A stretch of 64,000 nt of DNA from Paraphysomonas bandaiensis (lineage: Eukaryota > Protista > Chrysophyceae): positions 310,001 through 374,000 of the forward strand of contig CBFFRP010000146.1 of NCBI GenBank assembly GCA_965644295.1. Direction: 5' to 3'. A model generated the notes under the pieces. That model worked only from the letters and a program-made list of their open reading frames with translations. It did no database searches and was not told the DNA's origin. Both the position numbers and the translations under genes were made by a program. Position 1 is the stretch's first letter, and the number at the start of each line of letters is the position of its first letter. Shown here in pieces: positions 46,314 through 61,460 of this stretch.

Positions 46314-47360
46314 ATGCCATCATATAATAACTGGAATACATATCATAACAGTTTATGGAATATTCATAAACAATCAACTGAAAGTGTCGACATGTGTGAT
46401 GTCGGGACCTTCTCACCAGAATCTCAAGAGATTCCTAACTGTAAAAGGCTCCAGTTTAATGGTGAAGACCCTTTCATGGGTTCTATAGATGATTATATGG
46501 CATCTATGACTGACAAGTGTGATAAGGTTAATATGATAGATGATATGAATACATATGCCTCCACCCCATCTCATTATTCGCCTACTAAGAAGGCTCGCAC
46601 CGACTCCAATCACATAACTCCTCTGACACGAACTAGCTTTGATTTTATACCCTCGGAAACAGTCGGATTCTGTTCCGATGTGAGAGATTTCCAACTAAAG
46701 CATGTCTACAAGACTATTTCTGGGACATATCGTGTACAAATCAGCCGCGGCTGCAAATCCAACCCCAATAAGAAGTTTAGTCGTAATGCTCGAGTTGAAG
46801 AGGATGCGCTATGGCTTTGCGAGTGTGCGCTGATTCTCATCGACCAACCGGGGACGTTCAAAGACTTGCTTCGGAACAGCAACTACTATTACCTTGTTGA
46901 CAAACAAATTGTTATGTCTGCTGAGGACTTTATCCAGAAACTTGTAGAAAATATGAGAGATCTTTCTGCACGTGGCCTGCTGTCCATGGTCGAGGCGGAA
47001 AGACTCGCGCCCCTTCTCCAAACGCTAGTTTCTGGTGCTAGCATAGGGGCGTCGAATTCTCTCAGGCGATTGGACCGACCAAATTTTTCCCTTACCACTT
47101 TATATTATGATGATGACATCAAAGAAACTTCTGGACAACAGTATTTTCACTCATTTACTCGCGGTAGAAGCCCTACATCTGGTTCGGACTTCCCACGCTC
47201 TCCGTGCCAGGAATGGCAAGATGTGGTGCAGACTACCACTTTTGCCATACGTCCGAAAAGCCCTGAATTATCAAAGAAAGCCGAAAATGTCGAGTCGATG
47301 AGCCTCACTTCTACTACTCATCAGACTTGTGTCCAGCAGGCGGCTATGTCGATTCTCTGA
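46314..47360 (+). CDS. Putative transcription factor with a divergent AP2-like DNA-binding domain
   Basis: HVYKTISGTYRVQI...KFSRNARVEEDALWLCECAL has the three-strand + helix AP2 pattern, plus an NLS-like PTKKAR. Confidence 0.55.
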   Translation: MPSYNNWNTYHNSLWNIHKQSTESVDMCDVGTFSPESQEIPNCKRLQFNGEDPFMGSIDDYMASMTDKCDKVNMIDDMNTYASTPSHYSPTKKARTDSNHITPLTRTSFDFIPSETVGFCSDVRDFQLKHVYKTISGTYRVQISRGCKSNPNKKFSRNARVEEDALWLCECALILIDQPGTFKDLLRNSNYYYLVDKQIVMSAEDFIQKLVENMRDLSARGLLSMVEAERLAPLLQTLVSGASIGASNSLRRLDRPNFSLTTLYYDDDIKETSGQQYFHSFTRGRSPTSGSDFPRSPCQEWQDVVQTTTFAIRPKSPELSKKAENVESMSLTSTTHQTCVQQAAMSIL

Positions 47361-47889: not shown

Positions 47890-48252
47890 AGACGTCTAAG
47901 AGTCAGTCCTTTTCTCTGATATCCTATTATTTCGCGCTACGAAAGCTGCTTTTACATCGAAAGCACCACTAGGTGCAACCACTTTCGCTCTATTACTCAA
48001 AGCAAACGCAGTGAACAAGCAGAATGTTGATTAAGGTGAACAGCCCGGATGCTTGACTTCAGTAGGCAGTGTCAAGTTTTGACACAATTGACACAATTGG
48101 ATGATTTACTAAGTTAACTGGACGTTTATTTACTCAACAGGCAGCCCGATATCCCGGATGCCCTTGACGTGGGTTCATTTCCGGATGCCTGTTATTAGTG
48201 TCAAGACTCAAAGACGTCTACACAAGTGACACTTACTACTTACTAGTGTCCC
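47890..48252 (-). mobile_element. Repeat S copy interrupted by the LINE (continues at 60602-60680)
   Basis: Continuous with 60614 onward once the TSD is removed. An uninterrupted version sits inverted at 61110-61460. Confidence 0.9.
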
Positions 48253-48321
48253 ATCTCTCTCTCTTCGGGTAAAAACACAGTTCAACAAAAAGTTATACCT
48301 TTTTAGCTCGCTCCAAGCTCA

Positions 48322-50805
48322 ATGTCTTTATTGAGACCGTGGTTGTGTCCCATCAGCGGGTCCGGGCTCAGACTGTTCCCTTCTCTCCAAGCAGGGCAAC
48401 ATTTTGAAACACACCACACTGCCGACAAACATCTTGTCTTACCATGTTGTACATGCTCCCCGTTAGATAACGTGGCTTTGCAACCTTTCCCTTCACTAAC
48501 GCCATCAGTTAAACTAAGTGCCTGCACCACTACAGCGCTGTCAGTCCCTATTGGACATTTCCCTTGTAGATGTATCTGCACCACACTCCGTTCTCTACGG
48601 TTACAACCACTCATCGCATGGCTCGTGCGGGTAGGCACTAGGAAAAGGTGCACTTGTTCATTCCCTAACACCTTTGTTCTCCATCGACCCCGCTACCTTG
48701 TAAGACAGGACCATTTCTTGGCGACCGCACAAACCCACTCCACATGGACAATCTATGGTGCACTCACCAAGCAATCCTCCACCTCTCACGGCTTACCTAT
48801 CATTCCTATAGTCTACACATCTCATTGGATGACTACTATACTTTCTACGTGGTATGCGCGAATACAGTCGCTCTACACAGTATACAGCGTATCAAGCTGT
48901 ACTCTCCCAGTCAACCTCGTCGACTACACAACACGCTATCACCACCGCATTTACCACTTATATGTGCACCTCTTATATAACCACCCTTTGGAAGCATATT
49001 TAATCAATACGTACTCCTTACAAAAACCACCTGATACAATGCAACGTGGAGCCACTCCCTCTACCAAACGAACTTACACCTCGAAGTTTGTTCTCCCTCC
49101 CTCCCATCAACTGATGGACAATGATGCGCATGTTAAGAACGCCCTATCGGATTTCAAGAAATCCAAAGCCGACGTGCCCAGACTTCAGCTTCCATCTACT
49201 CGCACGTTCTTGGAATGGAGCAGCTTCGAACCAGCCATGGAATACCGAACTCTAGTGGTCAGCAACCTGAAAATGACAGACGATACGGCGTTCTTTGGAA
49301 TCATACATTATCTAATCAATGAATTGGGGTTTCCAATTTCACTCCCTACCCCGCAAGACCTCGCTACTTTCAGGGCAGCCGAGGATGCGCGAACTTGCTC
49401 AGATTTACCGGCTCCTACGGCGAGCAGAGTAATACGAGCATTCGCCCTTGGCAGACCTGGGTACGAGGTCAGGCCGGGTATGGGACAGAATGTCGCTGCT
49501 GATTCATGCATGCTCTCAGCGCCTCTCTGTTTTGATCTACATATTGAAACTGGCACCTCAGTTGACGACAAAGGGCGTCAACGGACAGAAAGTCGACACG
49601 TTCAGTTGTCACTGTTTCAAACCCCAAGAGAACAATTCGTCGATCGCTCCATAGAGGAACCAACTCTGGTACCCGTTGCTGCGATATATGGTATGACTGC
49701 TGATTCGGCCAGCACCAGGCCTGCACACGCCTACAGATTGCGGAATATACTGGACATGTTACTTCGCGCAGGAGGCTTTGCCACACTCCCCCCGTACGAA
49801 GTATTTTGGACTTTAACTCATTACAAAGGCAAAACTAGGGCTACAGACAAAACCTATCGCTATTACCAAATTCTCCTACTTCACCACCCTGTTCGAGACC
49901 AAGACTTAAGAACGAAATTTTACAAAGCACTATTCAACAATGAAGTTGGTGGACATGTAGAACTCAGCCTAGGCTCACTGTGTTGCCGAATGACAAGCAG
50001 AGAATCACCCTCGCTTAAGCAATCCAACTGGGCACCGACCCTCTCACTATTTCACATCGCCCTTAAGTCGGAAACACTCCTGCATCCCGTGCAAGTATGG
50101 AAGGCATGTGATGCAATAGGGATCCCTGCTGCGGATATACAAGACATCATATGGTCTGCGCGTAACCCGATCACTACCAACCGCAGGGAAAAAGAACGAT
50201 TAATGGAACAAACTTACATCTGTCTTGACAATAACAATGACAAGATCAAACTCACCTGGGAACTCTCTCGCCCTAGTATTAACACTTGCCTAAAAAGCGC
50301 CCTTGGGGACGAAAACTTACACCTTCTCTATCATACCATACCGATTCCTCCAGATCTTCACTCCCAACGTTTTCTGTATGCTCTGAACGAGGCAATTGAT
50401 ACTGAGGACCACAGTTCCCACCACATATCGCCTCCCATATCCTTCCAGCCCTTTGGTCCAACCACTGTACCACAACAGAGGTCAGCAGCTACTCGTTCCT
50501 CCACACCCAAACGGCAAAGACAGGTAGACATTTCCCCCCCTACCACACCGGCACCGACTCCCACCTGCCCGGAGCTATGCGAAATTGCACTCCACGCGTC
50601 CTCAAATCTAGTTCCACTAACCACGGTACACACCATTCTGTCCCGATTGGAAAACGCGGTAACGGACCTTTACAAGATCGACATAGAGACCACACTCGTA
50701 GTGCTTGATTACTATAAACAAAAAGTCGGCCAATGCCTACCGAAGAGGAATCAGGAAGACTACGAGCGCGATGACTCCGACATATTCGGGTCTGATTCCA
50801 ACTGA
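48322..50805 (+). CDS. LINE ORF1 (gag-like by position, no recognised domain; alternative start ATG 49039)
   Basis: 827-codon open frame starting 69 nt inside the element. Ends at a TGA in frame with ORF2. Confidence 0.75.
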   Translation: MSLLRPWLCPISGSGLRLFPSLQAGQHFETHHTADKHLVLPCCTCSPLDNVALQPFPSLTPSVKLSACTTTALSVPIGHFPCRCICTTLRSLRLQPLIAWLVRVGTRKRCTCSFPNTFVLHRPRYLVRQDHFLATAQTHSTWTIYGALTKQSSTSHGLPIIPIVYTSHWMTTILSTWYARIQSLYTVYSVSSCTLPVNLVDYTTRYHHRIYHLYVHLLYNHPLEAYLINTYSLQKPPDTMQRGATPSTKRTYTSKFVLPPSHQLMDNDAHVKNALSDFKKSKADVPRLQLPSTRTFLEWSSFEPAMEYRTLVVSNLKMTDDTAFFGIIHYLINELGFPISLPTPQDLATFRAAEDARTCSDLPAPTASRVIRAFALGRPGYEVRPGMGQNVAADSCMLSAPLCFDLHIETGTSVDDKGRQRTESRHVQLSLFQTPREQFVDRSIEEPTLVPVAAIYGMTADSASTRPAHAYRLRNILDMLLRAGGFATLPPYEVFWTLTHYKGKTRATDKTYRYYQILLLHHPVRDQDLRTKFYKALFNNEVGGHVELSLGSLCCRMTSRESPSLKQSNWAPTLSLFHIALKSETLLHPVQVWKACDAIGIPAADIQDIIWSARNPITTNRREKERLMEQTYICLDNNNDKIKLTWELSRPSINTCLKSALGDENLHLLYHTIPIPPDLHSQRFLYALNEAIDTEDHSSHHISPPISFQPFGPTTVPQQRSAATRSSTPKRQRQVDISPPTTPAPTPTCPELCEIALHASSNLVPLTTVHTILSRLENAVTDLYKIDIETTLVVLDYYKQKVGQCLPKRNQEDYERDDSDIFGSDSN

Positions 50806-53800
50806 CTTCTACTGGACTGGGACACTTTGGAGGCGAACAGCACTACACAGATATTTAGTTTGCAAGAGGCCCCCAAGTGGTCACCCCCCAGTCCACACCT
50901 ACTAAATCCTCAACACGTACTCACATTCGACATGAAACACACGCCCTTAGACTATCACCTCCGACCACCGCGCAAACCGCCAGACAAATTCCTACGCTCA
51001 TCGAGCAGTGTACATACAACAAGATGGCATCATGGACCAGAATATTCAAGCGACAGTAGTGGGGATGGACCGAGAAAGAGACCTGCCTCTGCTCAGTATA
51101 AGAGAAACAAACTCCGACGACAGAGCTGCACACGAAAACTACAGCAGTATCGTGATGGCACCATCCCATGCCTCCCGCCACATATCCAACGCAGACAGAC
51201 ACGCAGTGCGCTTCGCATGAGTCAATTCAATAAACTCATCTGGAAGGAGCACCTTCGACATAAATCGCAGAAAAGTGAGGCCCCTCCACACCAGCCTGAT
51301 ACCACTCGACCGGCCAGGGATGACATGACTACGAACCAAAGGCCGTCCCCCCATGACATAGTCCCACCGCAATCTACATCCCTCGAAAAGTCCACTCCAC
51401 AAGCCTGCGCAGTGATGTCCTCAACAGATCACAGTGACAGCCCTCTATGCTCACACGAGATTGCAACATCGTATAACCCATCCACCAGCACTTCTACTCC
51501 TCAGGATGGTTCTGGGATAACACAACAAATGTACTCCGCAGAACCGATTGAGACCCCACCAGTGTTCATACCGCATCCAGTACCAGCTGCTTTCCTAGAC
51601 TCCACCCTCCAGGAATGGACGTTCTATTCGCCCAGTGGATTGCTTGCCATTGCTTTGCAGGAAGAGATGGTCAGCAGTGTGACACAACTACTACAGTTGG
51701 GACACGACACTCCCGCTATCCACAGCCACGTGCGTCGCTCACTGGAAGAGGGAAAAATGATTGTAGCACGCCATTATGCGTATTCAGAGTACAACAACAC
51801 TCCTATGGCGGGGTTCTGCGGGCTGGCGGCAATTGCTTCCATTCACTACAAGAGCTCAAATGATAAGCTATACCCGTACCTGGACCCTGATGTTCCAGAC
51901 TCGAAAGATAAACTGCTCCAAGTCATACAGACGAGCAGAGAAGTACTCAACTCATACACAACAGAGGAAGCCAAAAAGCTCAACATTGTGGCCATTTGCA
52001 AGGAGCTCAAACAACTACTCACCACATATCACAGAGCACTTCGTAGGAAGAAACCTACTGCCATCGGAATACCCACAGAGAAATGGGGACATACTGATAC
52101 CATTGCCTTCTTAGCAGAAACCCTGAACATACGGCTCAGAGTATGGCAGGAAGAACCAGAAGTCCTAGGGCACAACTGGGCGTACTGGTCTACCTTTCAC
52201 TCAGCCTTCATTCCCAAGACGCAAGAACGGCCATTTCATGAGGTGTTCTGTTCGGAAGATCATTTCTTCCTAGATACAAAGCTACCAGTAAAACTGGAAC
52301 TCCACACGCTGTTGGACCGACTACCTGAACTTGTATGCGGACGGATACTCCAGGCACTACCACAACAATCTAATGAAGCTCAATGGCATCACCAGAATCA
52401 GGTAGGTACCCATCCTTCGCATAACTGCCAAGGGAAGGCATATTCCTCTGACAATAGTGGTGACGGACCGATACACCACCCCAAGAATAAGGTACCCAAA
52501 CACGCTAAGGAAATTGTACCACCGCGTGCACTCCTCACTGACTATTTCCCTGTCAAATGGAGATCACTTGCTCCCACATCCCCCTCGTTGAATTCTGGCG
52601 ACCCACCAGCACCGGACATAGCAGACTCAGCTCACACGAGTTCTCCCCCAGGCCCCATCCTACACGCTATGGGACAGGATTTCATGCCATTCCACTCTAC
52701 GGTTCTGAACAACTGGGTGGAATACGATGACTTCCACACCATAGCAGTCGCTCCACAGCCAGAACTAGTACAGGAGATACACTCGCAAATGCTGACCCCA
52801 ACTAGGATCGCAAATTGGGATAGCTTCATTGACAAATTCTCCAGGGCAGACAACTACATCTTTATGACCACATTTCCAAAATGTGAACATACGAAGGGTT
52901 CCACGTGCAGCGCACTCCAAATAGCACAGCAGTTGCAGACTTCCATCAAATCCAATGTGGAGTCCCCGCACGACATTTCCAAGCATATCAGAGCACTCTG
53001 CCTGACAAGAGGGGCACCACTTTCCTCCACAAAATCACTTCGGATGAGGTTGCAACAATTTGAACACTCTCAAAGAAATCAACCAGACAGCGAACTGGAT
53101 ATGGACGTGCAGGATTTTCAAATAATACTAGACCTACTATCTATACCATACAGGTTATGGGAAGCTGATCAACCACATCTAGTGTCGGGCTGGGCGCAGC
53201 TAACGCCTTTCTTCCGGCACTCCCTTACAAGGAACCTCACCACGGAAGATGTTACAACCCACGACATCGTCCAAAGCCAACACGGGTTTCACGTTCTTGC
53301 TACGACAGGCACTACTAGCATACCTGGTATCCAGTACCGACTCAACACTGCTCTCGCACGAACCAAACAACGCATTTCCAACTTACTGCAGCACCTGCGT
53401 ACCAGACAAGAAGGCGTCAGGATTGAGGATCCCCCAGATCCACGGCACCTTCAGATAGACACCATCTCGACACAGGCCGAGATACTTGATGTTTCTCTCT
53501 CCGCGAGAGTCCGACGCCACCTTGCACAAAGGTCCCCCAAGGATCATAACCACCTCAGGCAACTCATGTGCGCCATGGGCAGGGTGTATTGTCTAACCCT
53601 AAGACCCTCGGCGGTTAGAACACTACAACAAATACCAAGCGACGGGTACTGTGCATATAGCACCCTTCATTACATCCATGTCCTTGCAGCCAAAGAGAGG
53701 CAAACTCGCTCTTGCTCGAAACTTGACCTCAGGCACCATAGAGACCGTCTTACCCTTGCATCCTTCCTTACGAACCTAAGACACACTGCCTTACATGCGC

Positions 53801-54345
53801 TGTATCGGGATCACCAAGATACGAATTCCATACAAACAATACGGAACAAGCTCGTGCATGCCCAAACGGCTCTTGGTATCCCGAACAAGACAACATACAC
53901 TACGGCAGAGGATATCACCCATTGGCTTTCAGTACGTGAGGTCCATATGCTTGCCGCCACTATCCTACCATGTACGACATGGGCACAAAATGGTAATACT
54001 CTAAGCATAGTGGGACTACCTACAGACGCACACACATACAATATCACATGGAAGATGGAGGAACTAAGAGACGCTGTCACAGACTCTTATCCACATGTTA
54101 TACTGGAGGATGCGCATTACTTTCTACTGGACCCCACAGGACTTGCCACGGCCCTTGACAACGCACTGCTCGCTCTTGAAAGTAGACTCGCAACCAGTCT
54201 CCTACCGACGGACAGCACCATATATAATAATGTACCCGCCACAAACAAAGCTGTCAAGGTACGGCAAAGGACAACACAGAACCTCCTTGTCAGTAGACCT
54301 AGAAAAAGAGAACAACGAACAGCGGAGCCCCCGGACCCCACATAG
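50806..54345 (+). CDS. LINE ORF2 with three OTU-like cysteine-protease modules (first ATG 50932)
   Basis: PMAGFCGLAAI..KWG..EDHFF, KGSTCSAL (degenerate), and IPSDGYCAYSTL..HWL..DAHYF match the OTU pattern D-x-x-C...W...H-[YF]. Confidence 0.8.
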   Translation, partial: LLLDWDTLEANSTTQIFSLQEAPKWSPPSPHLLNPQHVLTFDMKHTPLDYHLRPPRKPPDKFLRSSSSVHTTRWHHGPEYSSDSSGDGPRKRPASAQYKRNKLRRQSCTRKLQQYRDGTIPCLPPHIQRRQTRSALRMSQFNKLIWKEHLRHKSQKSEAPPHQPDTTRPARDDMTTNQRPSPHDIVPPQSTSLEKSTPQACAVMSSTDHSDSPLCSHEIATSYNPSTSTSTPQDGSGITQQMYSAEPIETPPVFIPHPVPAAFLDSTLQEWTFYSPSGLLAIALQEEMVSSVTQLLQLGHDTPAIHSHVRRSLEEGKMIVARHYAYSEYNNTPMAGFCGLAAIASIHYKSSNDKLYPYLDPDVPDSKDKLLQVIQTSREVLNSYTTEEAKKLNIVAICKELKQLLTTYHRALRRKKPTAIGIPTEKWGHTDTIAFLAETLNIRLRVWQEEPEVLGHNWAYWSTFHSAFIPKTQERPFHEVFCSEDHFFLDTKLPVKLELHTLLDRLPELVCGRILQALPQQSNEAQWHHQNQVGTHPSHNCQGKAYSSDNSGDGPIHHPKNKVPKHAKEIVPPRALLTDYFPVKWRSLAPTSPSLNSGDPPAPDIADSAHTSSPPGPILHAMGQDFMPFHSTVLNNWVEYDDFHTIAVAPQPELVQEIHSQMLTPTRIANWDSFIDKFSRADNYIFMTTFPKCEHTKGSTCSALQIAQQLQTSIKSNVESPHDISKHIRALCLTRGAPLSSTKSLRMRLQQFEHSQRNQPDSELDMDVQDFQIILDLLSIPYRLWEADQPHLVSGWAQLTPFFRHSLTRNLTTEDVTTHDIVQSQHGFHVLATTGTTSIPGIQYRLNTALARTKQRISNLLQHLRTRQEGVRIEDPPDPRHLQIDTISTQAEILDVSLSARVRRHLAQRSPKDHNHLRQLMCAMGRVYCLTLRPSAVRTLQQIPSDGYCAYSTLHYIHVLAAKERQTRSCSKLDLRHHRDRLTLASFLTNLRHTALHALYRDHQDTNSIQTIRNKLVHAQTALGIPNKTTYTTAEDITHWLSVREVHMLAATILPCTTWAQNGNTLSIVGLPTDAHTYNITWKMEELRDAVTDSYPHVILEDAHYFLLDPTGLATALDNALLALESRLATSLLPTDSTIYNNVPATNKAVKVRQRTTQNLLVSRPRKREQRTAEPPDPT

Positions 54346-57300
54346 TCACTAAGAAGAACCAAGGGAGACCACAAACTTGTCAAGCATCAGCCAGCCGATG
54401 CCAGCCAGCCCGCAAGGCAAAAAAGGACGTCAATTACAGTGACAGTGATCCACAGACGGAACATCCCACTGACCAAAGTACCATCAACACCCCGTCCACC
54501 AGACCACTTCCACAACTCCAAACTGCTGATTGGGACAGGGACTGGCGAAATAAATTTTACATCGCGTACTCCGAAAAAGAAGTCAAAGGCCTATCCCTAT
54601 ATGCGAAGAAAAATTTAGAAGCTGACACCATTATAGCTGAGTACAAAGGTGACCGCATTCCGACTGTCGAGACGCGCACGCTCACACGCCGCTCAGACTT
54701 TATAGTACAAGACAGCACGGGCTCCTTTGCCATTGACGGATACAACCATGACCGTCAGCAAGTAACATGTGCAGCGGGGTACATCAATGATCCTCTTGAC
54801 ACAGATATGGCGAATGTAAAGTTCCTCACGAAAAACAAACGCATATATATATGTACGTTACGTCCCATTAGTAAGGACGAAGAAATCCTCATTAACTATG
54901 GACATGAGTACTGGTGTCATCCACGTTGGCCACTAGAGATCCTTATTCAAGCCAGAGAGGGCTATGCGAGAGACATCCGAGGACTATCCAACGATGCATG
55001 GGATAGGATTATCGCTGACAAAAGAGGTTCAACCAACGAACAGCAGGGCAACACACCTACAGACACAGGACTCCGACTCTCCACTTGGAACACCAATGGA
55101 AACCCAGCATCGTTCAGAAGCAAACTAAAGGCCATTATCCGACATTTCAACAAGCAACAGTTAGACATACTACTGCTGCAGGATGTGAGACTAACATGTA
55201 CTCAAGCCCGCTTCTTCGCGCAGACCGTTGAGGACGCCATTCAAGGATCTAGGGTATGCTTATTTCTCAACAAGACCTACAAGGTCACTAACCGTGACCC
55301 ACTCATGGGGGGGACCGCAGCCATTGTGAGTGAGAGATGGAAACGCCGCCTAGCTTCTACCAAAGCGGACTTCACTGGCCTTGGTCTAGTCGGGAGACTG
55401 GAATTCAAAACCTCCCCTACACAAACCCTGGTGATAATAAGCGTTTACTTACCACCTAAACCATCCACCCCTGGTTCGTGTACCTTATGGAGCAAACTGA
55501 CCACGATAGGGAAAGCGACCCGCAACACTAAACCGGTTGCCCCATATGATCTCCTCTGCAACATCATCACTAAATGGGTTACCAAGGCCCGGGCCAGAGG
55601 TCACACGGTAATCATTGCAGGCGACTTTAACGGATCCATGGAAACGCACACCACGAATAGAGATATACGCCCACTAGCCGGTAAACTCCAGCTGTCGGCG
55701 CCACTAATCACACAATTACTCCAACGGCAAGCTTTTCACACATTCCACAGATTGGACAAGGGAATCTCGCGTATCGATCACATACTACATACGCCACTTC
55801 CACAGCATATGCGAATCACTGACACCGGATGCCTCAATTCCCCCACCTTAATTGCAGCAGCGTTTGACCATAGGCCGGTTTGGGTTGGATTCAATATTAC
55901 TGTAACACAAGATATCTCTTCCCCAGAGTCACACTTAAAAATACCTCCTCGCCTAAACATCAACCCAAGGGATCCTGAGGAGGTAAAAGCGTACACTGCC
56001 AAACTTCTCATGCTACACGCCCAACTGCCCCCTATAGACACGAACCTCAGCCCAACACTAGACCCAGAGACTGCAGCCACCCGACTAGCGGCGATACATC
56101 ACATCACCTTGCAGGCAACGCTTACAGCAAAGGGTCCCCGCTACAGCCGTCGCACGAGGCTCCATGACCGGTGTCAGCGAATTCGTTCACATTTTAAAGA
56201 TGGTTTCTCCCCGGAAATGAGGGTAATTCAAGAAGGGATGGTTATGGTAATAAAGATAGTTCAGAAAATGTTTAACTCAGCTGGATATAAAAGACACGGA
56301 TGGCGTGGATCCCCATTACGCAATCCGATCCACGCGCTCATCACCGCCTGGCAGGAGCGCGGGAACTCGTACCTCCAAAACTCCACGGGACCTGCGAAAG
56401 GAATAGCCGACATCAACTTCAGGAATGATTACCGATCAGCAGACCCCAGAGCCATTCTGAGCTGGACTGCCAAACAAGTCACCAAGAAGAACCTTCTACA
56501 CATTGTGATTCGAATGCGAGGACTCTTGCACGGACGAGACAGGACGGAGATGCGCAAGAGGCTCACAGACCGTACAAACCAAATGGAAGCACTACTAGAA
56601 CAGAGAAGACTACAAGCAGTACTGCAGAAGATAGGACTTAAAATCAAAACGCCACTTCGACTAACGACAGTGAGAACTACTGACGGGACACTTCTCACTA
56701 CCCCGCAAGACATCCACGAAGGAATCAACAAACACTTTCGAGACCACCACGCGGAACCTGCAGGACTGGACCCAGTCGCACAAAGACTACAGGACGACCC
56801 CAACTGGTGGAAAACCCTCCTTGACCCTCAATCGGTGACTTCCCAGGAGCCCCTCCATCCGTGCTCGAACATACCCCTTACCCTACAACACGGACTACGA
56901 CGTGCACTATGCACTAAAGTTAAACCAGAAATGGCGGACCTACTCGGAAAGGCTTTAGAGAAGGACATCACGCACGAAGAATTCTACTCCACCCTACATT
57001 CCATATCCTTCAACCGGGCTCCCGGACCCTCCATGGTCTCATCCAACATGGTCAAATCCTGGCCTCCAGCCATACAACAGGAAGCATTCACCCTTATCAA
57101 GTCGCTCTGGAAGCACAAACACGTGCCTACTTGGTGGAGAGACAGAGTAATGACCCCCATACTCAAGAAACCAGGAGAACCCTCTTTTTCCAACCTTCGA
57201 CCGATCGGTCTGCTCGAAATATCACGGAAAATTCTGACAAGAATAATCTCCCACAGGATACTCACAGTCTGGGAGGAACAGCAGATCCTACACCCGTCCC

Positions 57301-60300
57301 AACATGGATATCGCTGGAGAAATGGCACAGACACGGCCATTTTAAGGGTTCTAGCGGCCTCAGAGGCAGCCAGACGTCACAATGCCCAACACATCTGCAC
57401 GCTCTGGGACTTCAAAAAAGCATTCGACTCCATAACACCTAATCTAATGAAACTAGCATGGGCTCGGCTAGGTGTCCCCGATGCTGTGGTTGAATGGTTT
57501 GGAGAATTAGACGCTGGGGGTCTCACATTCCCATGGACGCCGTTCATGGCGAACAACATGGAGCCACGCTCGTTGGCAGAACTTCTAGCTACCGACGGAC
57601 ACTTCCTTGCACAGTTCGTACTCGGATTTGAGGCCGTGAGAGGAATCACACAGGGGGGAACCGAATCCACTTGTGCCTGGGTGGCGCTACACGATATCCT
57701 TCTTACATGGTTAGACCTAGATCTTAGAGCAATCTGTCTTACACCATCACCACTCCTACTGACCCCGAACTCAAAGAAAAAAGTCTCCTTCGCGGATGAC
57801 ATCACCACCATAGATGTGTCTATCACTCAAGCCCAGGAAACGGCGATACGAATGTCGGCGTTCTGCAGCTTCTCGGGAATGGAACTCTCGGTACCTAAGG
57901 TTATCTGCACTTTTTTCCCTCACCTACGGGAAAATCTAGCCCAGGTCAAACAAACCGGACACATTACCTTATATGACTGGTATTGGAGACCCCAACCTGT
58001 ACCAATACAAACGACTCATGAATCGATACACTATTTGGGGGCTGACCTACCACTAACACCTACAGACACGGACTCATACAATTGGTGTACAAACTACCTA
58101 AAGGCAGCGGGCACACACCTTGGGATCAGGCACGCCTCAGCGGGTTGCAAAGTCATGGTTATAGAGACCCAAATCATACCCACTCTACTTTACAAGGCCA
58201 CCAAGGCTTCTTGGCCCCTGCAATATTACAAGAACATCGATTCAACTTGCGCAAACCTTTACAGGAAAGCACTAAGCCTGAGTCCTGGTTACCCCACGGA
58301 AATGATCTACCTCTCTCTCAGGCATAATGGACTTGGAATGAAACGCTTCTCAGACTCCGCTCAAGAACAAAAATGGGGCTCCCTACAGCGCGCCATAATC
58401 CTAGGCGGTGATGCCGGTGACGCAGCGCACTTTCTCCTAACACAGACTATCGCGCCGTACCCAAACTACCACCACTTTGCCTTAAGTCTGCGGGAATGGG
58501 GTACGGAGGTTGGCCTTACTCTCCAACAACCCGACAGTCCGGAACCTCAAGATACCAACACCCTGACCAACATTATCCGCACATTAGAACTGGATGATGT
58601 AACCGCGGATACATATCAGGCAATCTTCACCGACGGCTCATACACGCCTACAGCCCTATCCCCGCGCCGCATTACGCATGTAAACCCACGTACAAGATGG
58701 GCACATTATGGAGGAGCGGCGGCAGTCTGGCTCCCCCCGGAGGATGAATGGAAGAACGGTACAACAAAAATACTGCGATTAGAGACACCCTTCAGCGACG
58801 TGCCTGGACTTGGCCCGTATGCATACGAGCTCATGGGAGCAGCAATGGCGCTTATACTGTCTGCGCGACTCCCATCACACATACCGATAAATACGGACTG
58901 TAAGGCCGTCTGCATACGCACACACGAAGCACTCTCCGCCAGACGTCGGGCACTGGGGCATCGTGCCAAAGGTGTACTGCTCGAAAGCATCGCAGCAAAT
59001 AACGATTGCACAAGGACAGTAGCCTGGGTCCGATCACACCCCGAACGACGCACCTCTGATGAGTCTGAATGGACATATGAAGACAAAGGAATTTACATTG
59101 CCGACGCAGTAGCAGGAGGGGACTGGCTTGAGGTAGATCGACTACTCGGACGACAAAATTACACTGTCTGTAACATGGAAGTGGACCAAGCCATCGAGAG
59201 AATACTCACCGAGGGTTTATGGCACTGGCGCCTAACTGGGGAACGACGGCCGTATCGCACTAGCCCCCTGCTCACGGATTTCCAATCCCTCCGTAATCAA
59301 CGGACGCTGGAGGCATATACAGCTCTCCGAGACCAACGCTACGGTCACAATCCCGACCGGGCTCCTGGATACTGGAAAGACAGCGGAGCACTACTTCCGC
59401 GCAAACTGGCGCAAGCAGATGGTGGACCATCAAAGGACAAAGTGAGCTCCCACCTGCGCCAAAGAGTACTAAATGCAGCACTGACATGGGACAAATCCTT
59501 CAGCATAGGAAGAAACCGGGCGAAAACCAAACACGGACTCGACATGGCTAAAGCCGTATGCTCTGACTGCGGATTTAGACTAGACTCACTCAAGCATATG
59601 TGTCTAGACTGCACAAACGACACCATAACGCAGATAAGGGAGTCTGCATTTCACAGCCACAAAAACGCGCTCCTAGAAGAAATGAGTAATCCGGAATTAC
59701 CCCAATGGACCACCCCTGTACTCCAGCGACTCTCCAGCAGGGCCTGGAACCCTTCCGTGCCACAGGTGGAGAGATTCTGGACGGGTACCATCACAATGAC
59801 ACAACTTGAAATGGTTTTTGGAGATCACATCCATGAATCACTGACATCCCAAGGACTGCGCAGCATCGAATCAGCGATCATCAAATTACTGCTACCGCTG
59901 TTCGCTGCAGCAAAGCTCATGATCCAAGATCGCGGAAGAAGATACGTGACCCTACGGAAAGGCCCCCCAAGGCTACTACCGCGGCCGAGTCCAAACCACA
60001 GACAGAAACGGAAACGCCCAAGGGTGCTAAGATTACTAGGAATCCACAGACGAACCGAGACTGGAACACCGCCCACCGTACCTCTGAACCCTACCAACCA
60101 CACACAGAGGACCATAGCAGCGGACCGTATGAAACCAACAGACCCTAGACAAAGGCGACGACGTCTCCGGCAACTCCACCTATGCCCAACGCCCAAACGG
60201 TGCATGGCGACACCGCCACATTCCACCACACCAACAACCTCTCAGTCCACACATCTAGTGCTCGGTACACTCAGGACCTTAATACAGAACCCGGTACCTC

Positions 60301-60356
60301 AGAGTCAGGCGGAACCGTATCCCAAGGGGAGACCCCCGGACAACACGCGCCAGTGA
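54303..60356 (+). CDS. LINE ORF3 (pol): SET domain + APE endonuclease + reverse transcriptase + RNase H + CCHC knuckle
   Basis: The frame is open from 54303. SET: KGLSLYAKKNL..DTIIAEYKGD..IDG..AGYINDP..N..I.KDEEILINYG.EYW. APE: TWNTNG, LLQD, AGDFN, RIDH, DH. RT: LRPIGL, DFKKAFDS, GITQG, FADD. RNH: TDGS, YEL, TDC, WVRSH, AD. Knuckle: CSDC-x8-H-x4-C. Confidence 0.95.
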   Translation, partial: KKRTTNSGAPGPHIVTKKNQGRPQTCQASASRCQPARKAKKDVNYSDSDPQTEHPTDQSTINTPSTRPLPQLQTADWDRDWRNKFYIAYSEKEVKGLSLYAKKNLEADTIIAEYKGDRIPTVETRTLTRRSDFIVQDSTGSFAIDGYNHDRQQVTCAAGYINDPLDTDMANVKFLTKNKRIYICTLRPISKDEEILINYGHEYWCHPRWPLEILIQAREGYARDIRGLSNDAWDRIIADKRGSTNEQQGNTPTDTGLRLSTWNTNGNPASFRSKLKAIIRHFNKQQLDILLLQDVRLTCTQARFFAQTVEDAIQGSRVCLFLNKTYKVTNRDPLMGGTAAIVSERWKRRLASTKADFTGLGLVGRLEFKTSPTQTLVIISVYLPPKPSTPGSCTLWSKLTTIGKATRNTKPVAPYDLLCNIITKWVTKARARGHTVIIAGDFNGSMETHTTNRDIRPLAGKLQLSAPLITQLLQRQAFHTFHRLDKGISRIDHILHTPLPQHMRITDTGCLNSPTLIAAAFDHRPVWVGFNITVTQDISSPESHLKIPPRLNINPRDPEEVKAYTAKLLMLHAQLPPIDTNLSPTLDPETAATRLAAIHHITLQATLTAKGPRYSRRTRLHDRCQRIRSHFKDGFSPEMRVIQEGMVMVIKIVQKMFNSAGYKRHGWRGSPLRNPIHALITAWQERGNSYLQNSTGPAKGIADINFRNDYRSADPRAILSWTAKQVTKKNLLHIVIRMRGLLHGRDRTEMRKRLTDRTNQMEALLEQRRLQAVLQKIGLKIKTPLRLTTVRTTDGTLLTTPQDIHEGINKHFRDHHAEPAGLDPVAQRLQDDPNWWKTLLDPQSVTSQEPLHPCSNIPLTLQHGLRRALCTKVKPEMADLLGKALEKDITHEEFYSTLHSISFNRAPGPSMVSSNMVKSWPPAIQQEAFTLIKSLWKHKHVPTWWRDRVMTPILKKPGEPSFSNLRPIGLLEISRKILTRIISHRILTVWEEQQILHPSQHGYRWRNGTDTAILRVLAASEAARRHNAQHICTLWDFKKAFDSITPNLMKLAWARLGVPDAVVEWFGELDAGGLTFPWTPFMANNMEPRSLAELLATDGHFLAQFVLGFEAVRGITQGGTESTCAWVALHDILLTWLDLDLRAICLTPSPLLLTPNSKKKVSFADDITTIDVSITQAQETAIRMSAFCSFSGMELSVPKVICTFFPHLRENLAQVKQTGHITLYDWYWRPQPVPIQTTHESIHYLGADLPLTPTDTDSYNWCTNYLKAAGTHLGIRHASAGCKVMVIETQIIPTLLYKATKASWPLQYYKNIDSTCANLYRKALSLSPGYPTEMIYLSLRHNGLGMKRFSDSAQEQKWGSLQRAIILGGDAGDAAHFLLTQTIAPYPNYHHFALSLREWGTEVGLTLQQPDSPEPQDTNTLTNIIRTLELDDVTADTYQAIFTDGSYTPTALSPRRITHVNPRTRWAHYGGAAAVWLPPEDEWKNGTTKILRLETPFSDVPGLGPYAYELMGAAMALILSARLPSHIPINTDCKAVCIRTHEALSARRRALGHRAKGVLLESIAANNDCTRTVAWVRSHPERRTSDESEWTYEDKGIYIADAVAGGDWLEVDRLLGRQNYTVCNMEVDQAIERILTEGLWHWRLTGERRPYRTSPLLTDFQSLRNQRTLEAYTALRDQRYGHNPDRAPGYWKDSGALLPRKLAQADGGPSKDKVSSHLRQRVLNAALTWDKSFSIGRNRAKTKHGLDMAKAVCSDCGFRLDSLKHMCLDCTNDTITQIRESAFHSHKNALLEEMSNPELPQWTTPVLQRLSSRAWNPSVPQVERFWTGTITMTQLEMVFGDHIHESLTSQGLRSIESAIIKLLLPLFAAAKLMIQDRGRRYVTLRKGPPRLLPRPSPNHRQKRKRPRVLRLLGIHRRTETGTPPTVPLNPTNHTQRTIAADRMKPTDPRQRRRRLRQLHLCPTPKRCMATPPHSTTPTTSQSTHLVLGTLRTLIQNPVPQSQAEPYPKGRPPDNTRQ

Positions 60357-60945
60357 GTCCTCAGACACACGAGCAGGGCGAACTCACACACAACATCAAG
60401 AACGGAAGTGGTTGCACCTTGGTGCTTGCGGCGACGCACAAGCAGCTTCTGTAGCGTTAAATAGTAGGATAATAGAATTTGCGCTGATTAGTTATGGGTA
60501 GAGGTCTAACTAGTAGACTAGTATTCAACTAGCCGCTAAATCGGAACGGGTTTTTAACGCCTATTGCTAAATAAAAAAAGACATTCAATATACATTCAAT
60601 ATACTAGTGTCCCTTGTACGACACAAGCATTTGGCTATGAGTGGGCAATACAGTATCTGTCGACTGTATACTATATATAGTATGTAATCATGTGTTGTAT
60701 GTGTATAATATATAGTTACGTTGATGTGAGATTTTCATAAGTATTATTACAGTAGATTTATATAAAAAGTAACTATATAATTCAATATTTTAGTAAAATA
60801 TTTTTAATATAAATAGAATTGAAAGTACACAACAACTAAATTGTAATTAATTAACCCTAGTCTTCAAGTAAGTACGTATATGACACTTTTCCATATATGA
60901 AACCTGGTGAAATCACTTTACCAGGCTTCACGATCACACCGACTT

Positions 60946-61094
60946 CAAGCATTTGGCTATGAGTGGGCAAAAAAGTATCTGTTGACTATATATAATATAT
61001 ATATATGACTCACGTTAGTTTCCCGGACAAATATCTCCGGTACTTATCCCCATGAACATCACAAAAAGGTACGAGTCCAACTTTGTTGAGGGTG
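60946..61094 (-). mobile_element. Repeat S 5' fragment
   Basis: atttggctatgagtgggc...cacgttagtttccc...ctttgttgagggtg. Confidence 0.8.
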
Positions 61095-61109
61095 AAGTAA
61101 ACCGCATAT

Positions 61110-61460
61110 ATATATATAGTATATAGTCAACAGATACTGTTTTGCCCACTCATAGCCAAATGCTTGTGTCGTACAAGGGACACTAGTAAGTAGTAAGTGT
61201 CACTTGTGTAGACGTCTTTGAGTCTTGACACTAATAACAGGCATCCGGAAATGAACCCACGTCAAGGGCATCCGGGATATCGGGCTGCCTGTTGAGTAAA
61301 TAAACGTCCAGTTAACTTAGTAAATCATCCAATTGTGTCAATTGTGTCAAAACTTGACACTGCCTACTGAAGTCAAGCATCCGGGCTGTTCACCTTAATC
61401 AACATTCTGCTTGTTCACTGCGTTTGCTTTGAGTAATAGAGCGAAAGTGGTTGCACCTAG
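61110..61460 (+). repeat. Inverted, uninterrupted copy of the LINE's target locus (repeat S)
   Basis: 61177-61460 is the exact reverse complement of 47969-48252. 61110-61188 matches 60602-60680 with a few mismatches. Confidence 0.92.

Follow-up and report, generated by a model that had tools for sequence, protein, structure and literature searches.

Long interspersed nuclear elements (LINEs) are usually seen as minimal machines composed of a nucleic-acid chaperone, an endonuclease and a reverse transcriptase (RT), and as passive targets of host chromatin silencing. The locus described here raises the question of whether a LINE can carry, as a lasting part of its own polyprotein, a histone-methyltransferase-type SET domain and proteases of the OTU fold. 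It lies in a 64,000-nt stretch of contig CBFFRP010000146.1 of Paraphysomonas bandaiensis, a marine protist; this whole stretch is called the window, and all positions are counted within it. The genome searched for relatives comprises 62.5 Mb in 669 contigs. The interval 48253-60601 of the plus strand (12,349 bp) is a nearly intact, recent insertion of a multi-copy LINE of the AP (apurinic/apyrimidinic) endonuclease (APE) type. Intact copies consist of open reading frame 1 (ORF1, 827 aa), a TGA codon and a polyprotein of ~3,180 aa, in which an OTU-fold module 1, a degenerate module 2, a module 3, a minimal SET domain, the APE, the RT, a probable RNase H and a CCHC zinc knuckle follow one another in this order. 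This APE-type LINE with fused SET and OTU-fold modules is real, well bounded and conserved.

Boundaries of the LINE and its copies in the genome

A preliminary description of this DNA had proposed a full-length non-LTR (long terminal repeat) element of 12.35 kb flanked by a target-site duplication (TSD). This is borne out by a 12-bp TSD and by an empty site. The duplication, tactagtgtccc, was read directly on the left (48241-48252) and on the right (60602-60613) of the LINE, and occurs a single time at the empty site. The latter is a paralogous stretch at 61111-61376 on the minus strand, in the opposite arm of an inverted repeat, where the matches to the two flanks abut. The 200 bp to the left of the LINE correspond to 61177-61376 (minus strand, 100% identity), and the first 78 bp to its right correspond to 61111-61188 (minus strand, 96% identity). 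Because these flank matches overlap by exactly 12 bp, the target is present once in the other arm, and the LINE therefore inserted into one arm of the inverted repeat. A search of the ends of the element for LTRs or terminal inverted repeats (TIRs) of at least 25 bp found none. Base composition also sets the LINE apart from its flanks, with a GC content of ~0.50 vs 0.40 and a strong skew of C over G.

Searches of the genome returned at least 49 DNA matches to the LINE, a number of matches and not of copies. Most of them share the 3' end and have scattered 5' truncation points, and they are mostly 93-100% identical to the window copy. The copies terminate in ...aaagacattcaata and continue into unrelated flanks, all different from one another. 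The 5' half is present in many LINE copies, and several of these 5' halves stop at contig ends, which is typical of a young, assembly-breaking repeat. The hallmarks of non-LTR elements are therefore found together: a TSD, copies that share the 3' end and are truncated to varying degrees at the 5' end, and the absence of LTRs and TIRs. The LINE belongs to the APE type, as the APE is N-terminal to the RT in one protein, and the same pair is found in single ORFs of L001, L038, L042 and L041, which are other copies in this genome.

Coding frames

The coding region of the window copy is made up of three plus-strand ORFs: 48322-50805, 50827-54345 and 54807-60356. ORF1 (48322-50805, 827 aa) ends at an in-frame TGA (50803-50805) and has no recognisable domain; no credible Pfam family was found in it, and it has no similarity to the ORF upstream of P0008, a metagenomic relative discussed below. 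ORF2 (50827-54345), which contains the protease modules, is 1172 aa long in the window copy and lies in the same frame as ORF1. ORF3 contains the APE and RT.

The break between ORF2 and ORF3 is caused by an A-run at 54303-54307, in which two extra A's are private to the window copy. The run has five A's in this copy vs three in six other copies (one of them only 85-87% identical at the DNA level), and in those six the module region reads straight into SET-APE-RT. Contigs of three public sequencing runs (X9, X13 and X1), which between them carry two different organism labels, likewise omit 2 letters at 54303. Copy L001 is a single ORF of 2703 aa across the A-run, with the SET domain at residues 782-886, the APE at 947-1184 and the RT at 1641-1933. 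The window copy is thus frameshifted at 54303-54307, and its SET domain is not in frame with the modules. The domain order given in the preliminary description (ORF1, three OTU-like modules, SET, APE, RT, RNase H, CCHC) stands, but the single frame that it assumed for the window copy does not: the SET domain is in frame with the modules and the polymerase region in intact copies such as L001, and is separated from the modules in the window copy by the 2-bp insertion.

The TGA at the end of ORF1 is present in five of six copies, and no contig from the public runs differs there. In copy L002 it is replaced by CGA, leaving 2162 aa open from the ORF1 ATG to the end of the contig. Nothing but this TGA (context AAC TGA CTT CTA) splits ORF1 from the polyprotein, which lies in the same frame, and the match tables of family B contain a single TGA within the equivalent region. 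Stop-codon readthrough or reinitiation at the TGA might set the ratio of ORF1 to polymerase protein.

The SET domain

The SET domain at 54588-54902 (plus strand) matches Pfam PF00856 over the complete profile (positions 1-105 of 105) with 38.1 bits, the cut-off being 22.4 bits. Its presence, which had been proposed earlier, is therefore recovered by profile search. The domain is minimal and lacks a post-SET Cys cluster. Its frame is open upstream of the first ATG of ORF3: the full-length match was obtained from the stretch 54306-55199, and ORF3 taken from its ATG holds only the C-terminal end of the domain according to Pfam. The PF00856 threshold is also passed in L001, L038, L042, L041 and P0008.

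The closest solved sequences are KMT2D and KMT2C (E-values of 1e-7 to 1e-5), followed by Set1, PBCV-1 vSET, MLL1 and EZH2. Across seven lineages of the LINE and its relatives the catalytic Tyr (in the motif E-L-x-x-[DN]-Y-G) is conserved in six, as is the Asn (6/7). In the GxG motif, the second Gly is replaced by Ser or Ala. Judged by profile match, this is a genuine SET domain. A search with the SET profile for small SET proteins gave one uninformative match.

The OTU-type modules

Module 1 occupies 51724-52326 (plus strand), with the candidate catalytic Cys at 51817-51819 and the His at 52261-52263. Module 2 (52819-53367, plus strand) is a degenerate OTU-type module, in which the Cys (52906-52908) lacks the G-x-C context and the His motif H-[YF]-[FY] is replaced by HGFH. 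Module 3 (53572-54180, plus strand) has the motifs P-S-D-G-Y-C-A-Y, with the Cys at 53650-53652, and A-H-Y-F, with the His at 54115-54117. The modules of families A, C and D (see below) align on a common Cys ... W ... W ... His layout (alignment A4). The shared columns are the Cys, typically in the context P-x-[DN]-G-[YF]-C, two invariant Trp residues and H-[YF]-[FY]. The Cys and His columns are kept in modules 1 and 3 of all families aligned; for module 3 this amounts to the Cys in three of three rows spanning the site and the His in five of five (families A, C and D and two fragments).

An AlphaFold2 model of module 1, built from a joint alignment, reached a pLDDT (predicted local distance difference test) of 74.6 and a pTM (predicted template modelling score) of 0.76. 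The model places the Cys (residue 32) at the beginning of helix 32-41 and the His (residue 180) at the beginning of strand 180-183. A Foldseek search of the PDB with this model found OTU proteases only among the top 50 matches, including nairovirus vOTUs, DUBA, otubains, OTUD1, OTUD3 and Ceg23, with a best E-value of 3.5e-3, a probability of 1.00 and TM (template modelling) scores of 0.36-0.50. In the ESM Atlas structure list, otubain/OTU clusters came first (TM 0.57), and fragments of nairovirus L proteins were found with TM scores of 0.51 and 0.65. Taken over three structure libraries, the module 1 model matches almost only OTU deubiquitinases, with middling scores that cover the whole domain. 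An OTU fold of module 1 is thus supported by modelling. A leave-out hidden Markov model (HMM) of the type-2 modules matches module 1 at 47.6 bits, and an OTU fold of these modules is supported by this strong sequence homology. Module 3 is probably an OTU fold as well.

Sequence searches were less informative. No PF02338 (OTU) match was found in any of the modules at E-values of up to 10, and a phmmer search of PDB sequences with ORF2 found nothing. The comparison of module 3 with module 2 by hhalign was not significant. In a language-model Atlas search, module 3 yielded no more than a weak lead to OTU. ORF2, searched exhaustively against 1.84 billion representative proteins, matched only five short fragments of related elements. 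The three OTU modules of the preliminary description were therefore confirmed in part: the fold of module 1 (by structure) and the common Cys/W/W/His layout hold up, while no OTU profile matches, module 2 is degenerate and the link of module 3 to the others is weak.

Some further features of the module region were noted. In module 2 of family D (L042:1-540) the Cys column is occupied by Asp (ARGLDALAA) and the His motif KHYFLL is kept; by its sequence it looks like a pseudo-protease retained beside an intact module 3. The motif G-P-x-Y-S-S-D-x-S-G-D-G-P, followed by basic residues, occurs at 51034-51072 and 52432-52470 (ORF2 residues 70-82 and 536-548). It precedes modules 1 and 2 in family A and is found twice in family C (L039, residues ~376-388 and 543-555). 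It is not a canonical 2A motif (NPGP) and could be a cleavage or docking site. A contig of run X1 with very high word depth skips 225 bp within module 1 (51938-52164); an internally deleted variant of the LINE circulates in the X1 sample.

Endonuclease, reverse transcriptase, RNase H and zinc knuckle

The remainder of the polyprotein had been described as an APE-RT-RNase H-CCHC polymerase region. The first two domains are verified by Pfam: the APE lies at 55083-55796 (plus strand; PF03372, 38.6 bits) and the RT at 57165-58043 (plus strand; PF00078, 55.4 bits), with the SFADD motif at 57786-57800. Among solved chains, the RT is closest to an unnamed RNA-directed DNA polymerase and to human LINE-1 ORF2p (E-values of 3-5e-7). 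The other two domains were recognised by motifs or language-model search. The stretch 58626-59114 (plus strand) has the D-E-D-H-D series of an RNase H (FTDGS, AYELMG, INTDCK, WVRSHP and IADAVA), these residues are invariant in seven lineages, and RNase_H accounts for 22 of the 30 nearest named clusters in the language-model Atlas search (score 0.93). Profile searches for RNase H were negative with Pfam, with phmmer and with a seven-lineage profile against the PDB. The stretch is a probable RNase H. The C-terminal CCHC zinc knuckle (C-x2-C-x8-H-x4-C; 59559-59612, plus strand) was read directly and is kept in the relatives P0007, P0008, P0009, P0010 and P0015. The corresponding stretch of P0015 also gives a weak match to Pfam zf-RVT.

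Families, relatives and RT phylogeny

The genome contains no fewer than four divergent families of this layout. They are here called A to D, family A being that of the window LINE, and those compared are 41-68% identical at the protein level. Family B is 54-57% identical to family A in the module region, as read from match tables only. Families C and D share 41-44% identity with A and 62-68% with each other. The preliminary description had proposed a search for SET, APE and RT in one frame elsewhere; the combination was found in one open frame in L038, L042 and L041, as well as in L001. Family C (L039:1-1100, G000 C32) lacks module 1 and has two modules. Upstream of them it carries, in an open frame, tandem repeats of ~70 aa rich in Cys and His (CTERTVEMLCMHQVCLFTAHGTAHLHQNTHIHLPS...).

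Relatives were also found outside this genome. P0001 was rejected as an independent metagenome relative, being 100% identical to a copy in this genome. P0008, a JGI metagenome contig, is only 35-37% identical to any family in the P. bandaiensis genome. It encodes two Cys/His modules (36.6 and 17.2 bits to the module HMM), a SET domain (25.4 bits), an APE and an RT. P0008 shows that the same layout is present in at least one element of another organism. P0009 contains, in the same order, a module, a degenerate SET-like stretch, an APE, an RT, an RNase H and a CCHC knuckle. In P0015, whose RT is ~24% identical, a full-length but sub-threshold SET match lies ahead of the APE and RT. P0014, a distant member of the same RT clade, has one OTU-like module near the N-terminus and a weak second one (Cys ... 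W ... W ... His) at residues 2497-2643, at its C-terminus.

A tree of 32 RT sequences places all SET carriers in one clade (support 100/99), with an inner clade of eight (98/92). Sequences that lack SET within these clades are either truncated fragments or the members most remote from the rest. The clade of SET carriers is separate from the other APE LINE matches. The layout goes back to the ancestor of a deep LINE clade.

Purifying selection on the SET domain and module 3

Family D (L042) and its subfamily D2 (L044) were compared by the Nei-Gojobori method. The dN/dS ratio (nonsynonymous to synonymous substitutions) was 0.16 for module 3 (215 codons) and 0.14 for the first half of the SET domain, which precedes a frameshift of L044's own (47 codons). 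These values, a check proposed with the preliminary description, are like that of the APE (0.16, 237 codons). The APE-RT spacer gave 0.10 (445 codons), the partial RT 0.05 (90 codons) and the linker between module 3 and the SET domain 0.65 (176 codons). Between families C and D protein identity is 75% in the SET domain, 77% in the APE, 84% in the RT, 53% in module 3 and 38-49% in the linkers. The SET domain and module 3 are maintained by purifying selection.

Occurrence in public data and transcription

A 4.35-kb test stretch of the LINE was found in runs of 15 studies, among them marine and seawater metagenomes. In a marine metatranscriptome three short contigs map to 50727-51383 and span the TGA. 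A 5.1-kb LINE contig was obtained from a run guessed to be RNA. The family is probably transcribed.

The 3' untranslated region and the insertion site

The 3' untranslated region (UTR; 60357-60601, plus strand) ends in ...aaagacattcaata without a poly(A) tail, and in the window copy it contains the unit acattcaata twice. The last ~190 bp of it (60400-60601) match short dispersed repeats at 76-89% identity (G000 C263, C407, C42 and C338), which suggests non-autonomous partners that borrow the tail of the LINE. An Rfam search of the LINE found no ribozyme and no other RNA family.

The inverted repeat around the LINE spans 48053-48252 and 60602-61376. Its centre (~60975-61137) folds, and its match to a miRNA precursor is far below threshold on both strands. 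Copy L027 adjoins a related dispersed repeat, and the repeat may therefore be a favoured target. A 348-aa ORF is located just upstream of the insertion site (46314-47360, plus strand).

A possible mechanism

The reading that is considered probable is that of a conserved OTU-SET-APE-RT LINE in which the SET domain likely methylates a chromatin lysine and at least one OTU module is an active protease. Integration would proceed by target-primed reverse transcription, in which the APE would nick the target, the RT would copy the RNA and the RNase H would remove the template. Because the SET domain lies only ~60 residues upstream of the endonuclease, it would travel with the integration machinery. 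Its resemblance to KMT2/SET1 enzymes is the reason for proposing that it most likely methylates lysine on chromatin, perhaps on histone H3, at the target or the new copy or in the vicinity of either. Such methylation could ease access or promote expression at a later stage. The role of an active cysteine protease is proposed for at least one OTU module, one in which Cys and His are invariant; it would cut the giant polyprotein into working parts and/or strip ubiquitin-like tags. The OTU-like proteases of some RNA-virus replicases do both, and arterivirus PLP2 and tymovirus PRO are examples of OTU-fold proteases located in replicase polyproteins.

Several results weigh against this reading. No cleavage sites were identified in the polyprotein. 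The NH(S/C) motif of the SET domain is N-D-P or N-D-A in most lineages, its His being replaced by Asp (by Glu in P0015); this His is needed in SUV39H1. In P0009 the catalytic Tyr is lost and Phe is found in its place. Given the N-D-P motif, the catalytic activity of the SET domain is uncertain. The AlphaFold2 model of module 3, built from five sequences, failed (pLDDT 39.5), and what links this module to the folded one are shared motifs and weak leave-out HMM scores (only 4-10 bits between type 2 and type 3, in both directions). When the six frames of the genome were searched with PF02338, 10 host loci were recovered and no LINE copy. Searched against PDB sequences, the profile of module 3 matched a lectin by chance and nothing else, and the profile of all modules had a viral OTU on top with a non-significant E-value of 0.91. 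The RNA contigs are no proof of a full-length transcript, and carry-over of DNA is possible.

A more specific version of the reading is doubtful at present. In it the SET domain would be an active histone methyltransferase carried to the target, and its mark, possibly H3K4 methylation in view of the kinship to KMT2/SET1, would open the target or keep heterochromatin from silencing the inserted element; processing of the polyprotein, or removal of ubiquitin from chromatin or the ribonucleoprotein, would fall to one OTU module.

Alternative explanations

Two alternatives concern the structure of the element. The SET and OTU-type domains could result from a one-off capture of host exons, from a LINE lying within a host gene or from an assembly chimera, a doubt already raised in the preliminary description. 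This is practically inconceivable, because the TSD and the empty site enclose the whole 12.35 kb, the same 5' half is present in many copies, independent sequencing runs hold the same sequence, and at least four divergent families and the element of another organism have the domains in the same order. The other alternative is that a programmed -1 ribosomal frameshift joins ORF2 to the SET-polymerase frame. In the window copy the SET frame indeed has no ATG before the SET domain and overlaps the end of ORF2 by 43 nt in the -1 frame, as this explanation would have it. However, the six copies without the two extra A's, including the one of 85-87% DNA identity, read straight through, the contigs of three public runs also lack these two letters, and L001 is one ORF of 2703 aa. 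A programmed frameshift is therefore very improbable and was rejected.

The other alternatives accept the layout and differ in what the domains do. The SET domain, the OTU modules or both could be kept in a catalytically dead state, as binding or scaffold modules that anchor the ribonucleoprotein on chromatin or protect it; the SET domain would then be, for example, a binder of lysine or histone tails, and the modules binders of ubiquitin. The N-D-P motif in place of N-H-S/C, the missing post-SET zinc cluster, the Phe of P0009, the degenerate module 2 of family A and the Asp at the Cys column in family D all fit this explanation, and purifying selection fits catalysis and binding alike. On the other hand, the catalytic Tyr of the SET domain is kept in six of seven lineages, module 3 has its Cys in all three spanning rows and its His in all five, and module 1 keeps both residues, which the model places at the N-terminus of a helix (Cys) and at the start of a strand (His) as in active OTUs. 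Such a non-catalytic role is rated as unlikely. It is also possible, at a similarly low probability, that the SET domain is active on a substrate other than chromatin, such as the element's own proteins or a host factor, e.g. a restriction or repair protein. Many SET enzymes act on non-histone substrates; the domain of the LINE is minimal, its similarity to KMT2D is weak (E-value of 1e-7) and specificity is unreadable from sequence. Against this stand the closest solved relatives, which are all histone methyltransferases (KMT2C/D, Set1, PBCV-1 vSET, EZH2), and the direct fusion of the SET domain to the DNA-nicking domain in every lineage.

Comparison with known elements and proteins

The LINE resembles L1-group elements (human LINE-1 ORF2p, and plant L1 with RNase H) in the APE N-terminal to the RT, the FADD motif and the C-terminal CCHC knuckle, as well as in the upstream ORF1, TSD, 5' truncation and common 3' end. 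Among solved structures, human L1 ORF2p is the closest named relative of the RT. Unlike L1-group elements, it has a protein that is 3-4x longer, with OTU-fold modules and a SET domain before the APE. Its ORF1 has no recognisable RNA recognition motif (RRM) or coiled coil, it lacks a poly(A) tail, and ORF1 and the polymerase region lie in one frame split by a TGA.

Accessory cysteine proteases occur in other LINEs. A Josephin-related protease is among the domains of active Chlamydomonas elements including Dualen (PMC9977147), and NeSL and Utopia carry an Ulp1-like protease (PMC4640811). The P. bandaiensis LINE is similar to Dualen/RandI of green algae and NeSL/Utopia of nematodes in being a non-LTR element with a cysteine protease of deubiquitinase or deSUMOylase type. 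It differs from them in the OTU fold and in having up to three tandem modules, and for those elements no SET domain has been reported. A restriction-like endonuclease is present in Dualen and absent from the P. bandaiensis LINE.

The same two domain types are known from DNA transposons. SET domains are found in the Phytophthora proto-Helentron (PMC4067079) and in Helitrons, HarbingerS and Plavaka PAG2 (bioRxiv 10.1101/2025.02.11.637652), and OTU proteases in Helentrons (PMC4067079); OTU proteases have also been discussed for Ginger elements (Ginger1, PMC2836005). The recurrence of both domain types in Helentron-type elements, OTU in Helentrons and SET in the proto-Helentron, points to convergent recruitment of a host-manipulation toolkit by unrelated elements. 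In those DNA transposons SET or OTU is a separate accessory ORF, but here both are fused into an RT polyprotein and conserved across an RT clade.

Viral OTU proteases such as the nairovirus vOTU are the best structural matches of module 1, and they share the placement of an OTU fold inside a giant replicase polyprotein. Unlike in these viruses, no ubiquitin-like cleavage motif was identified in the LINE, and sequence identity to viral OTUs is 10-16%. The closest solved sequences to the SET domain, KMT2D, KMT2C, Set1 and PBCV-1 vSET, share the catalytic Tyr with it. Like vSET it is a minimal domain without pre- or post-SET zinc clusters. Unlike KMT2/SET1 enzymes, it has N-D-P instead of N-H-S/C, lacks the WRAD-binding and other KMT2 regions and is fused to an endonuclease. 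The preliminary description knew of no non-LTR lineage with an in-frame SET domain and tandem OTUs, and this is upheld by a full-text literature search, which found no published non-LTR element with a SET domain.

Significance

With a coding capacity of ~4,000 codons the element is very large for a LINE. A whole LINE clade retains a histone-methyltransferase-type domain beside its endonuclease, together with deubiquitinase-fold proteases, under selection as strong as that on the endonuclease. Being young, multi-copy and probably transcribed, the family would lend itself to direct study if the organism can be grown. If the SET domain is active, nature would here provide an example of a retrotransposon that marks proteins or chromatin in cis. 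Should the more specific version of the mechanism be true, it would be a retrotransposon that encodes its own chromatin-writing anti-silencing system.

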